The notes under the pieces: model-generated
Databases searched by the model: none
The model's input: only the letters and a program-made list of their open reading frames with translations
Told to the model about the DNA's origin: nothing
Origin: Adineta vaga
Lineage: Eukaryota > Animalia > Rotifera
Direction: 5' to 3'
DNA length: 64,000 nt
Assembly: GCA_021613535.1 (NCBI GenBank)
Contig: CP075494.1
Coordinates: 8,060,001 to 8,124,000, forward strand
Made by a program: the position numbers and the translations under genes
Shown: positions 16,215-24,584 of the stretch, piece after piece
Position numbering within the stretch: position 1 is the stretch's first letter
Layout of the letters: each line of letters opens with the position of its first letter

Positions 16215-16218
<4 letters not shown>

Positions 16219-16346
16219 GGTTTTCTACTGCGAAAATTACTTGATATATTGAACTTAATACGTTGTCTTTTATAACTACGATATGTAACACCACCTGTCG
16301 TCGATTGAGTTTGAGCGTAAAGGGGTTCCGTATAAACTTCCACCAT
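16215..16346 (-). promoter_or_regulatory. 43-aa upstream ORF in the patA leader; its stop overlaps the patA start (CC-ATG-A)
   Basis: ATG at 16346 reads [46 protein letters not shown] at 16217-16215 overlaps the main ATG at 16218-16216. Confidence 0.7.
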
Positions 16347-16886
16347 TAAGTCTTAAACACTTCGTCAAATCTCTTCCCGGTCGATTTGTTGGGTGACTGA
16401 GAGAAGGAGAGATCGAGAATCGAATACTTTATGGATTAGTTATTGAATTCTTCTCTTTATATATACATATTCCGATAAGAAAGAAAGAAAGAGAAAAGGA
16501 GAAAAAAAAGCGAAAAAATAAAAGAGAGAATTATCTATCGATATTTAGATAGAGAAAATCATTGTGTGAAGTATAACACCTGGATCAAAGAAGAGAGAAT
16601 GAAAGGGTTATAGCCCTATTAGACACACCCATTCAGTATGAGAGAGAGATAGAGAGTGAATAAGAGAAATAGATAAGTGCCCCGAAAGAGAAAGAAAATT
16701 CAGCTTAAATGGTAATCTTTCTCTCTCTCTCTCACGCTCACGCATTTCTGACGGTGCATATCGATCGAATAAAAAAAACTTCAATGATGGCATCTTTCTA
16801 TTTTTAATCTCTACTTTCAATCATTTGAAAAAAGTACATTGAAGACTTTTGTCTTATTTATGATTACGATATAAGAAAAATTTTAT

Positions 16887-16996
16887 TAGTAAGCAAGAAT
16901 CCAACTAAATAAATGTAAGTATAAAGTACAAAGAAATACACTTTTCATTTCTTTGTACTTTAGTGCCTAAATTTATTTAGCAGATTCTTGCTACTA
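16887..16996. repeat. Long imperfect inverted repeat (hairpin) with about 50-bp arms
   Basis: Perfect 16-bp core TAAAGTACAAAGAAAT (16922-16937) pairs with ATTTCTTTGTACTTTA (16947-16962) around a 9-nt loop. Outer arms pair via CTAAATAAAT and AGCAAGAATC. Confidence 0.9.
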
Positions 16997-18346
16997 TAAA
17001 AGAAAGAGAACAGGATATAACCTATGGTGTTCGAATCCTACTTTCAGTATTCATTATATTATTTACACCTATATATATTTGTACAAATTTGATGTGATGC
17101 AAGAGTCGAAAATCAGTTCGTTGGAAAATTCTATTTTGTTAAAACTTAGAGATCATTTCAGTAAGACTTTTTCTCGAAGAAAAAGTAAGAAAGATTGTTT
17201 GGTTATCTTTGATGAATCATTCTTTGTCAGTGCTGACGATGTAAATTGATAAAATTCATATCATCTGACCGACAATAACAATGATGTGAAAAAATGCCGG
17301 ATGACTATCGATAACGAGCAAATATAGAAATCAATTTTTTTTTATTATTATTTAACATTGATTTACTCAAGATTTATTATTCTTTGAAGAAAAGATAAAA
17401 ATAATTGAAGATATTTAAATGCTTTATCATTTCAACTCGTGATTTGATATCTAAAAATAGTATATATAAATGTACCGATTGATATCCCTAGTTTTTTTTT
17501 CTATATTGACATGGAACCTTCTCGAACTTTCGTCGTCATCATCGTCGTGTATAGTTTTACAATGGTAACAGAACTTTATCGATAATATGAATTGACGATT
17601 AGAAAGTAAAGTCAGACGATGATAGAGAATTCAAAAGCATATGCAATGATTGATTAGATTCGAAGACATAACTCACTAAATACTGGATAGAACTATATTC
17701 TAGACCAAAGAGTATATATGAAGTATAGCTTTTGATATTTTCATGGTTGATTTATTCAAAAATCAAGTCATGTAAAGTAATCTTGACCATATACTCTCAA
17801 TTAAGTATTTATATGAATGAACATAAATTAGTGAATAATAATGATAAGATATGAGTATTCATTGAAGTTAATTATAGTGTAATTATTTATCACTGGTCAA
17901 AATCGCGATTAAAATGATAAATGAATCGATTCTAATAGAAGCGATTATTGAAAATGAATATAAATATTTTGTTGTTACTATCCAAGAGTAAGATCTGTAT
18001 AAAACAGATGATGAAATAGTTTGTTTCATGATTTATTGTTATTAAGTCCTTGATTTGATTTTGTTCTTTTTCTTTTTACTCATGAAAAACTCTTGAAAAA
18101 AATTCTTCTCTAACCAATTAAAACTCAGTTCGATAGATATCGTTTATAATTCTACTACTTTTCTTTTGAGCATCTCTAATCGTGTAATTCTTTTCAAAAT
18201 GTGGTTTATATCATCAGAAAACATAGCTCATAATTTAACAATATTCAATTTTATAGTTTATCCAATCAAAATCATCCAAATCGTCCGGTTGTCATACTCA
18301 TATTACTTCACTTTAGAATAAAATCTCTTGTTATTTTTTTGATGAA

Positions 18347-20781: not shown

Positions 20782-21620
20782 GAATTGACATTGTAGTAAA
20801 GACCAACATTTATATAGATTATTTAATCAAAAAATATAAGCAAAAAGACATCCTAAATAGATCAATGAATGCTCTCGATCATATGTAAAAAATAGGCACG
20901 TTTATTACAAGTTTAGTCTAATTCAATAAAATAATTGAACGATTTAGATCGTACTCTTCAATTCAGTAATCAAACCACGTGTCTAATCATAAAACGATGC
21001 GAAGAGTCAATCTGTTGCTATAGCAGAGAAAAAGAAAGAGAGAGAGAGAGAGAGGAAAAAAAGTCTCATTCTTTACCAACAACGACTCAATCTGTGACAA
21101 GGGCGTTCTACTGCATTTTCTTTCTTTTCATTTCTATGCTCAACAGTTGTCATCGCACTCTACACTTGTGCACGACATTTTTCTTCTCTTCTTTTTTTTC
21201 TTTCTTTTTTTTTATATATTCATTGAAAGCTGTTGCTTTCATTTTAAAAGACATCATATTTTTCTATCATTACCATATATATTATTGTCAAACAGAAATC
21301 TATTAAAGGTAAATTGACTTAACATTTTTCTTCCATTGTATAGATGATTGATTGGTCCGAAAGAAGGAATTGATATACGATATTTTCATATATTGTATGA
21401 TAACATTAACTCACATTGAAATTCCGTCTACACTTAAATATACGTAAAGAACGACAAGTTATAAAAAAAAGAAAGAAGTTATGATAGCAGCACATTAGTC
21501 AGCGGAGAATGTTCTCGATCAAGGATTTCTTTGTAAATTTATCAATATATATATATATATATATTCTTGTTTTAGTCATACTCTTACTAATAGACAATCG
21601 AACAATCATTTCCTGTAATA

Positions 21621-22591
21621 ATGCATTCGGCAGCAGATGATACTAATCAACCAAAACCACCTGTTCGAGCTGAATTTGCACAAGATCCTCAAAGAGAACC
21701 TTTCTTACCAAAAGTACCAGAACGTATGGATTTACATGAACATAACACCACTAATCCATCGCGTCAGGTAATTCATCGCATTTTTTTTCTAAAACAATAA
21801 ATCACAACATATACATCCTGTTTTCTTCACTGATATCAATGAGATATTCTAAATGAAAATCGTAGGAGGAATAATGATACTAAATAAACATATATATATC
21901 GTTTGTTTTGATACAAGCGACTCCTCGGTAAATAAATAAACCTGATGCCTACTTGTTAATGTATGATAATAAAAACGATAGTTCGAAACGTTTTTCATTG
22001 TATAGAATGAGTGCTGGAGTTGATGTAAGTTTTGGTATATTCAATCTCAAACAAATAAAATTTCTTTGATTTTTTAGACTGATTGTACTTGCAATTATAA
22101 TCGTTATGCTACAAAGAAGACAATTGGTAAGTTGATTGTATTCATTCAACGATAGAATCATTGCTTTTTCTTTTTCAGGTCACGGTTTTCTAGAATTTGC
22201 TTTACTCAGTATGTAATATTTCTTTTTCTTTCTTTTTCATTAACAAAAGACACTTCTTTTCCTTGCACTTTTCACAGCTAGTAATACAATGCAATTACGA
22301 ACATTAATAACTCAAAAACAACGTGATGGAATTTGGATTGCTTCACTTATTCTTGTTTGTATATCAATACTTGCACAAATAGGCTTAACATTTCTCTTAG
22401 TTATTGTTGGCAAAGGTAATATACAAAATCCTCAAAAACAAATCAAATTAGAACGTTATAATAATATAACATTATTTCTGACAATGTTAATATCAACGAT
22501 CAACGTAATTATCAATGTATTTATGTCCACAACAAGTCCAACAAGTTATTTAGACACACATTCATTAGAAATCTTGAAAAAAGAAAATTAA
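21621..22591 (+). CDS. Ninjurin family protein, 4 exons (with a candidate alternative first coding exon)
   Basis: NYNRYATKKTI|GHGFLEFALL|TSNTMQLR followed by two TM helices (ISILAQIG; ISTINVIINVF). Confidence 0.85.
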
Positions 22592-23135
22592 AATTCTTAT
22601 CTATTTGTAATAATTTTTCATATTTTATTGGGTGATGTCAGTTTATTCTTTCTTTTTTGTAGTACTATCTGTTATTGTCGTTAGTTTTTTTATTCTTCAG
22701 AGAGAGAGAAAAAAAATTAGCTAAACTCTTATCTATCTTACATCAATGAATCCAAATATACAAAATTTAAATAAAATGACGTCAATAAAAAAATACATTT
22801 TACTTTTCTATGTGAATATTAAAAAAAAAATAGAGAAAAGATAGCAAATATATAGTAGATCTAAACTATATATACATATGACACTAAACGTGAATATAGA
22901 AGGAGCCGTAACCTTACAGCCTCTACCTCTATTCTGGCAGAAATACGTTTTTTTTTCTTTCTCGTTCTGCGACTACTAGTTGTTGTGTTGTCTTGTAAAA
23001 TATATTCTCTCGCAGCACAAACGTATAATCCGATCCTTGTTTTGATTACTACAACTACAGGAATAACTTAGAATTGAAGAATAGGATACAATACAATTTT
23101 TCAATCGTCTATTCAATTGTTGACAATCTTTCTCG

Positions 23136-24584
23136 ATGACTCAATCGACTGTTCGACATTCGAATCCATTTTGGATTGATCAAAAACATGATTTTATTCC
23201 AGCTTTATTAAAACATCCACGAATTATTCATGGAGAATTAGCAACGAATAATGATGAATATGATGTCGTTATTATTGGTACTGGATTTTCGGGTGTAGCA
23301 TGTGCATATTGGTTAAGAAAACTATATCCTATCGAACGTTTTCCTCGAATACTTTTATTAGAAAAAAATGCTCTACCATGTTCGGGTGCATCGGGTAGAA
23401 ATGGTGGTTTTCTTTGGCCAAGTTATGATTATTTAGCAGGTTATGTTGAAGATTTCGGTTATGAGGATGCCTGTAGATGGGTTGATTTTCAACATGAAAA
23501 TATCCGACAAATTGCTGATGCTGTTAAAGAAAATGGAATTGATTGTCATATTAATTTAACACGTGGTAATGTGGCTTTAGCTCGTACGAGTGAAGAATTA
23601 AGAGATATTCTTCGTTCATATGAAATTATTCAAGATTATATTCAAAAACATCCACAAACAAAAATGACGCTGGATAATTTAGAATTATGGGATGAAACTA
23701 AATGTCAAGAAATGTTACATTCAAGTAAATTTATTGGAGGAATGTTTATGCGTGAATCGGGGACTGTTTGGGTAGCAAAATTTGTTTATGGTTTATTAAA
23801 ATATTGTCTCGATCAATCAGGTGTCGATTTAATGACACAAGGAAAAGTTATTCGAATTGAAGATTCAAAAAAATTAGTTCTAGAAAATGGACGAGTAATT
23901 ATCGCAAAACAAGCTATTGTTCATGCAACAAATGCATATGCTGTTGAATATCTTGATTTTACTCGTGGAAAAATCATACCAACACGTGGACAATGTAGTC
24001 TTTCAAAGCCAATGGAAACAATCTTTTGGCCATTTGGTTTATCAGCACGTGATGGAAGAGAATATTATCATCAATCTCCGTCGGATGGTCGTATTATGTT
24101 TGGTGGTTGTCGATGGCGAAGTCCTGATACTGAACATCTCAATCAAAATGATTCGGAAATCAATGAATTAATTCGAGATGAACATGCACGATACTTTAGT
24201 CAATGGCATCCAGATATTACAGAGAAAAATCATTCCGTTGAAATTGAACAAGAATGGACAGGCATTATGGCATTTACTGTTGATGAATTACCATTAATTG
24301 GACCATTACCAGGTGATGATAAACAATTTTTGTTATGCGGTTATAATGGTAAAAGTTGATTTCTTCATTCATTCAATCGTTGAGAATATATTTGTTGATT
24401 TTTTTAAGGAAATGGAATGCCGAATGTGTTTTTATGTGCAAAAGCTATTGCACGAATGATTGCCAATGATGATCCATATAAAGAAGGAGAAGAAAATCAT
24501 ACAGTTACTTTTCTAAAAATGTTTTTACCTGAACGATTTTTAAATTCAACAAGAAAACAATCATTATCCGAAGAAAAACAATAA
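23136..24584 (+). CDS. FAD-dependent oxidoreductase, DAO superfamily (PuuB/OrdL-like), 2 exons (intron 24349-24408)
   Basis: DVVIIGTGFSG (Rossmann fold), SGASGRNGGFL, VHATNAY, IIPTRGQ, WTGIMAFTVDELPLIG and GYNG|NGMP motifs. The substrate is inferred from family only. Confidence 0.85.

Follow-up and report, generated by a model that had tools for sequence, protein, structure and literature searches.

A conserved upstream open reading frame under peptide-level selection in the leader of a bacterially derived putrescine aminotransferase gene of bdelloid rotifers

Most mRNAs of the polyamine pathway carry upstream open reading frames (uORFs), with behaviors that include leaky scanning, ribosome pausing, and reinitiation (PMC2811004). 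The uORF of Arabidopsis polyamine oxidase 2 (AtPAO2), for instance, is reported to repress translation when polyamine is low and to permit it when polyamine is high (PMC7503886). Here, we consider a uORF in the leader of patA, the putrescine aminotransferase gene of the rotifer Adineta vaga, found in a stretch of 64,000 nucleotides (contig CP075494.1, positions 8,060,001 to 8,124,000) referred to below as the window. The uORF is genuine and its conservation runs deep; elements of this kind are known, but this one appears not to have been described, and no earlier report of it was found in paper searches of incomplete coverage. It stands out for its place on a horizontally acquired gene. The coordinates of all features are collected in Table 1.

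The genome searched comprises 100.8 Mb in 6 pieces, with about 30% G+C and short GT-AG introns, and the nearest named homologues of the window genes come from Adineta, Rotaria, and Didymodactylos. Our uORF statistics draw on 20 distinct patA leaders from bdelloids, most of which were selected on the patA coding sequence rather than on the uORF: they were collected via the neighboring gene, patA exon 2, or full-length PatA, and only two (L036 and L037) via the uORF peptide. The uORF is present in 19 of the 20, including A. ricciae, A. steineri, both Rotaria socialis copies, Didymodactylos, many metagenomic bdelloids, and the second genomic copy of patA, which lies on another chromosome. It is kept across all three named bdelloid genera plus Didymodactylos. 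Its length ranges from 35 to 58 codons. In the second genomic copy, the uORF starts with AUG, has 35 codons and the same core, and ends 9 nucleotides upstream of the patA ATG, in frame with patA. Codons 1 to 33 align without gaps across the 17 copies of our codon-level alignment, within flanking sequence that is rich in indels. The core of the peptide reads R-x-Y-K-R-Q-R-I-K, often followed by a DPRLDP-like tail; the pattern [KR]RQ[RH][IL]K is found in 18 of the 19 leaders, and five of nine core codons specify Arg or Lys. The Didymodactylos uORF has a shorter and divergent N-terminal part, retains the start context and YKRQRIK, and has an RDPRLDP tail in common with several others. The second R. 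socialis copy (L045) carries an additional upstream ORF of 17 codons.

The reading frame itself is maintained. It is free of stops in all 17 copies, while neutral simulation on the fitted tree put a stop in a mean of 9.4 of 17 tips and gave no stop-free outcome in 5,000 trials; the remaining five frames, reverse strand included, have stops in 8 to 15 of the 15 copies counted. The ratio of nonsynonymous to synonymous change (omega) was 0.66 over codons 2 to 33 (p=0.012), against roughly 1.3 when the frame is shifted and 0.14 for exon 1 of patA, and IQ-TREE comparisons with omega=1 gave 2dlnL values of 11.7 to 23.7. For codons 22 to 33, the half that contains KRQRIK, our own codon model gave 0.33 (p=3.5e-4), IQ-TREE having failed to separate models on this 12-codon subalignment. 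Synonymous switches are seen within the core (AGA/CGA/CGT, ATT/ATC/ATA, and AAG/AAA). Synonymous divergence (pS) is lower in the uORF (0.36) than in patA exon 1 (0.54), and therefore constraint at the nucleotide level may contribute, which would inflate omega. The constraint falls mainly on the C-terminal half, a pattern also described for the stalling uORFs of the polyamine pathway (PMC2811004). The peptide is under frame-specific selection and shows the degree of conservation that characterizes conserved-peptide uORFs.

In searches for relatives, a profile of the 17 uORF peptides matched the window genome at the two patA copies only, and among 1.84 billion representatives, it found eight proteins, all of them, by sequence, free small ORFs of the patA uORF family. 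An ESM Atlas search gave no usable match. The core was absent, when read by eye, from the leaders of AdoMetDC and two ODC-like genes of this genome. One AdoMetDC copy (L081) has an out-of-frame upstream ORF that overlaps its start; the other AdoMetDC copy has no similar peptide.

Table 1. Features of the patA leader and of the neighboring oxidoreductase gene, in window positions
Feature	Position	Strand	Details and basis
AUG-started uORF, 43 codons plus TGA	16215..16346	-	Stop overlaps patA ATG in the window; sequence, orthologues, spliced RNA contigs
Conserved uORF core, codons 23-33	16248..16280	-	KRQRIK at 16271-16254; leader alignment, omega
uORF start context CTTA-ATG-G	16343..16350	-	Conserved, suboptimal; 19 leaders
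Conserved noncoding leader block	16364..16386	-	18-40 nucleotides upstream of uORF AUG; DNA alignment
TATA-like box (putative function)	16455..16463	-	Conserved in most aligned leaders
Conserved 25-nucleotide upstream element, candidate promoter site	16605..16629	-	Ends in a 12-nucleotide near-palindrome; leader comparison
patA, putrescine aminotransferase of bacterial origin	14446..16218	-	7 exons, 1422 nucleotides in sum, 473 amino acids plus stop
FAD (flavin adenine dinucleotide)-dependent oxidoreductase (PF01266)	23136..24584	+	Two predicted exons; domain match; not part of the uORF element
AUG-less 36-codon open frame with RIQYNFS, oxidoreductase leader	23029..23139	+	Judged to be chance; sequence, simulation, orthologues

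RNA contigs from four runs were available for patA. In three runs of the window species, a contig spans both the uORF AUG (uAUG) and the intron 1 joint; two of these contigs start 8 nucleotides upstream of the AUG (16354) and one 127 nucleotides upstream, positions that cannot prove a transcription start site. Intron-free transcript contigs of two other bdelloids contain the uORF, as the first AUG, together with the whole coding sequence; they have at most 116 nucleotides upstream of the uORF AUG and no shared leader-like 5' end. One mature mRNA carries patA and, in its leader, both the start and the stop of the uORF. Over half of bdelloid transcripts are trans-spliced (PMC1925144), and some patA transcripts may be trans-spliced downstream of the uAUG; in the window species, there is an AG 11 nucleotides upstream of the patA ATG. 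Spliced-leader addition just upstream of the uAUG, hinted at by the two contigs starting at 16354, was considered and set aside: the AG there is not conserved, and no leader-like loose end was seen.

The geometry of starts and stops is informative. The uAUG has U at -3 in 19/19 leaders and G at +4 in 18/19. For the patA AUG, A at -3 is invariant in all 19; among 25 annotated neighboring starts, this position is A in 10, C in 7, U in 4, and G in 4. The uORF lies in frame 0, 1, or 2 relative to patA in 4, 7, and 8 leaders, respectively, always with a stop of its own. It is therefore not an N-terminal extension of PatA, and no frameshift or readthrough fusion can be the conserved product. The hallmarks of termination-reinitiation are a stop-start overlap and an upstream UGGGA motif. 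Here, the end of the uORF stop falls anywhere from -47 to +41 relative to the patA ATG (within 11 nucleotides in 16 of 19), the ATGA overlap serves as the uORF stop in 4/19, and UGGGA occurs in 2/19. Since codon 2 is Lys, all patA starts have the letters ATGA, and the overlap is therefore incidental. The C termini of the uORF peptides also vary among leaders.

The host gene is well defined. Searched exon by exon against protein models, patA has NF008570 (putrescine aminotransferase) as the best model for each exon tested, and its six GT-AG joints are supported by RNA contigs. An orthologue, P0110, matches E. coli YgjG (PDB 4uox) with an E value of 1e-165 over P0110 residues 10 to 441, and the patA start aligns close to the N terminus of E. 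coli PatA. In a quick tree search, the 13 bdelloid PatA proteins group as a single clade (SH-aLRT 100) nested within bacterial PatA; Didymodactylos branches outermost among them, and P0129, P0131, P0143, and P0145 are sister proteins. The preliminary description of the window had taken patA for a foreign gene of putrescine catabolism, and the model matches, the tree, and the RNA joints support a bacterial-type putrescine aminotransferase gene that now has introns. The simplest reading of the tree would be a single transfer from bacteria before the radiation of the sampled bdelloids. At the one close bacterial locus fetched (L058), there was no uORF-like peptide, and the upstream gene ends beside patA; the uORF probably arose between the arrival of the gene and the divergence of Didymodactylos from the remaining bdelloids sampled. 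In other bdelloids, patA is found in synteny with genes for the oxidoreductase, a lectin, MMADHC, and ninjurin. In one lineage (L027/L028, around 2790 to 2850), the patA copy lost its second intron along with the uORF. A contig of a Flavobacteriaceae metagenome-assembled genome (L072) contains, at 1501 to 1734, an exon with 96% identity to bdelloid PatA, which likely reflects rotifer contamination or a misjoin. No paper linking bdelloids with putrescine aminotransferase was found in a literature search of incomplete coverage, and to our knowledge, no PatA-type putrescine route has been known in animals.

From the list of key PatA/YgjG residues (PMC4244111), the window exons and orthologues keep Lys300, Asp271, Glu243, Gln119, Phe180, Lys183, Phe327, Thr332, Leu419, and Arg426. 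Nearly all residues of the YgjG putrescine site are retained, a point in favor of the reading of the uORF given below. Phe91, at the active-site entrance of PatA, is Tyr in ornithine aminotransferases (PMC4244111); Tyr also occupies this position in the window PatA, in 8 of the 9 bdelloid proteins, and in each of three sister proteins that were checked. Given this substitution, the substrate range of bdelloid PatA may differ from that of E. coli PatA.

What does the uORF do? We consider it fairly probable, at roughly 65%, that this conserved-peptide uORF acts in cis as a translational gate on patA. One can envision that PatA is made by ribosomes that scan past the weak uAUG. Those that initiate there would translate 35 to 58 codons, losing speed on account of R-x-Y-K-R-Q-R-I-K in the nascent chain; having terminated at or close to the patA AUG, they would reinitiate poorly and block the ribosomes behind them. 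A pause during elongation seems likelier than a stall at termination because the tail and the stop position move. Polyamines might set the balance of the gate, such that putrescine is degraded only when plentiful, as for AtPAO2. This is the least sure step, and we put it somewhat below even odds; it is suggested because the host gene is catabolic for putrescine, with the sign taken from AtPAO2. More tentatively still, the peptide could be a nascent-peptide sensor that arose de novo early in the evolution of bdelloids, of a new type with a basic KRQRIK core and no PP or PS, which would switch translation on in response to abundant putrescine or some other diamine.

Several observations weigh against this interpretation. 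The sequence by itself names neither a signal nor a direction of control. The PP and PS motifs of known polyamine sensors are absent from the uORF peptides, and the variable tail and stop position make a stall at termination on a fixed sequence unlikely. Owing to G at +4, the uAUG context is intermediate, not "poor" as defined in PMC8892498. Omega for codons 2 to 21 is 0.87 and not significant. Finally, the leader in L027/L028 is short and lacks the uORF, with only ATG-TAA left, and in the second R. socialis copy (L045, 1877 to 1996), the uORF is intact and its core has degenerated to FIRRRIK.

A gate need not respond to polyamines. The same arrangement could be bypassed under eIF2-alpha phosphorylation or altered start codon stringency, as in the CHOP, GADD34, and Hox type, or the Arg/Lys cluster could sense the supply of basic amino acids, with its five such codons in nine. 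A single uORF with a conserved suboptimal context ahead of a strong main AUG would suit this; bypass combined with an elongation stall has been modeled for GADD34 and CHOP (PMC9971878), and conserved suboptimal uAUGs have been described as stringency sensors (PMC8892498). Set against it, the uORF sits on a gene for putrescine breakdown, and the polyamine pathway abounds in uORFs that respond to polyamines (PMC2811004). We assign such signals the lesser part of our confidence in a gate.

If the gate is left aside, the mRNA might be bicistronic, with the uORF encoding a microprotein that acts in trans. Selection at the peptide level on a basic core, a length of 35 to 58 amino acids, and the fact that all eight database matches are free small ORFs are consistent with this, and R-x-x-K-R-Q-R presumably resembles the consensus of a monopartite nuclear localization signal. 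We regard it as unlikely, however, given that the peptide occurs only upstream of patA, that the fixed weak start and a stop beside the patA AUG suggest a role in cis, and that the N-terminal half is barely constrained and the C terminus free.

Somewhat less likely again is that the conserved feature is the RNA, with the uAUG context pairing with the core codons for Arg-Ile-Lys and the conservation of the peptide being in part a by-product. A helix of 11 pairs, with 92.7% of cells paired, is predicted by RNAalifold; 13 of 17 copies encode Lys31 (16254 to 16256) by AAG, which complements the uAUG context and is a rare codon, accounting for 6 of the 117 Lys codons counted in coding sequences of bdelloids; and the low pS of the uORF points the same way. 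Yet there is no compensatory change or covariation, scores equal those of shuffled sequences, the helix appears in only 1 or 2 of 19 single-sequence folds, Arg27 alternates among AGA, CGA, and CGT, and the stop-free frame would be left unexplained. The helix over the uAUG was rejected for its lack of covariation.

The preliminary description had proposed something different: that patA and a PuuB/OrdL-like oxidoreductase gene share a polyamine-sensing leader, with +1 frameshifting and termination-reinitiation at an ATGA overlap. The letters it quoted are present. CC-ATG-A at 16218 (minus strand) and CG-ATG-A at 23136 (plus strand) both follow +1 frames open to the overlapping TGA; RIKFNIS is at 16262 to 16242 and TTGGVT at 16301 to 16284 (both minus strand), RIQYNFS is at 23083 to 23103 (plus strand), and the RWCYIS and RSLF segments with their stops are there, as is TTTGIT (23051 to 23068, plus strand), which lies in a third frame and ends in TAG. 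Their value as signals is another matter. The best seven-residue match between the two leader peptides has a BLOSUM62 score of 23; 4.3% of simulated leaders reach as much, as do 50 of 852 tiles of the window. As many as 39% of the ATGs in the window read ATGA, and a 36-codon open frame has p=0.06. The +1 frame of patA starts at an ATG (16346) that the description did not mention, while that of the oxidoreductase has none; the one upstream ATG nearby (22878) opens a frame-0 stretch that closes at 22979, upstream of RSLF-TGA.

Orthologues were decisive for this paired model, which they largely refute. RIQYNFS is absent from all five orthologous oxidoreductase leaders in an alignment that is poor and indel-rich, and both it and the TTT-TGA site are missing even in A. 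ricciae, the closest orthologue. The main start is ATGG in R. socialis, and A. steineri has stops directly upstream of its ATG. On the patA side, TTGGVT occurs in 3 of 19 leaders, and the few ATGA stops and the use of all three frames leave no conserved part for the overlap or a +1 shift. In frameshifting of the antizyme type, an AUG-started ORF1 passes at its stop, by a +1 shift, into the long functional ORF; here, the +1 frames end at the main ATG, and RSLF-TGA lacks an AUG of its own and is not found in A. ricciae. Two points could still be counted in its favor: the patA uORF stop is near the start in most species, and 4 of 6 oxidoreductase leaders have a +1 frame open for at least 28 codons, a weak and unexplained point, with unrelated peptides. 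We consider the model very improbable, and the resemblance of the oxidoreductase leader to that of patA is chance. The broader idea that an acquired gene gained a eukaryote-style uORF stands for patA, with its selected peptide, and fails for the oxidoreductase, with no AUG and no conserved peptide; in the comparison of orthologous leaders that had been proposed, peptide conservation held for patA (with the core omega given above), and retention of ATGA and the oxidoreductase leader did not.

That the uORF is an alternative first exon, its C|GTATT donor in the second Arg codon joining exon 2 in frame to give PatA another N terminus, shares the phase of intron 1 and a CGT in 14 of 17 copies and is scarcely credible, as the joint is absent from four RNA runs, the GT is lost in L019, L025, L038, and L040, and conservation extends beyond the putative donor; this splice donor was rejected on the RNA joints and the GT loss.

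Farther upstream in the patA leader, the noncoding block (16364 to 16386) changes reading frame between species. The 25-nucleotide element, about 260 nucleotides upstream of the uORF AUG, is kept in both patA copies and most orthologues, with 0 to 5 substitutions in nine leaders and 7 in three others, and has no second occurrence in the window when as many as 6 substitutions are allowed. In L016 and L034, its near-palindrome is a perfect one, by a different route in each. It is a candidate transcription factor site.

The oxidoreductase gene is single copy in the window genome. Its nearest nonrotifer proteins are cyanobacterial (35% identity), with proteins automatically named PuuB at 26 to 31%; its NCBIfam matches include no PuuB model and are all far below cutoff, its plasmid hits are generic, and its orthologue P0014 has no PDB match. 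By these comparisons, a PuuB identity is neither shown nor excluded. A possible GT-AG intron (22994 to 23060, plus strand) in its leader would remove part of the segment first described. Public gene models fuse ninjurin with the oxidoreductase in A. ricciae (L011, 10001 to 12903) and MMADHC with ninjurin in R. socialis (L013, 2717 to 7749), probably annotation errors. Elsewhere in the window (26031 to 30615, minus strand) are pieces of an RNA-dependent RNA polymerase gene, with PF05183 in the syntenic genes.

A foreign gene has here been domesticated at the level of translation, having gained introns and a selected upstream peptide. With no homologue outside its family among the representatives searched, the peptide is a candidate new arrest peptide, and if the sensor reading is true, a foreign enzyme would have been wired into animal polyamine homeostasis. 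The natural loss in L027/L028 and the degenerate copy L045 offer ready comparisons.

How does this uORF relate to known ones? The small uORF of plant AdoMetDC (48 to 55 amino acids) is similar in length and, with mammalian MAGDIS, provides a model of sequence-dependent repression (PMC2811004). The patA uORF differs in having no conserved tiny overlapping uORF, no fixed C terminus, and no penultimate Pro, and the AdoMetDC-type genes are biosynthetic. A likeness to the plant AdoMetDC uORF was dropped for want of Pfam support, the peptide having no Pfam match at E values up to 10. The upstream conserved coding region of AZIN1/ODC shares a weak start and C-terminal conservation (PMC2811004), its start being non-AUG and its C terminus having two adjacent prolines close by; the patA uORF has AUG in 19/19, no adjacent prolines, and no PS end. 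In vertebrates, the polyamine-catabolic gene SSAT is overlapped in the +1 frame by a 44-codon uORF (PMC2811004), as in the window patA, but that frame is fixed in vertebrates, whereas the patA uORF frame is free and peptide conservation is its main feature. CHOP and GADD34 offer one inhibitory uORF with an elongation or termination pause and stress bypass (PMC9971878), with no sequence link to the patA uORF. At the protein level, bdelloid and E. coli PatA have catalytic and putrescine-site residues in common; the bdelloid gene differs in its six introns, in Tyr for Phe91 in most bdelloids, and in a uORF without a bacterial homologue in the searches run. AtPAO2, like patA, has a single uORF on a polyamine-catabolic gene (PMC7503886). 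It belongs to another enzyme class and kingdom, and no sequence link was found; patA adds a host gene of bacterial origin, which might respond in a comparable way.

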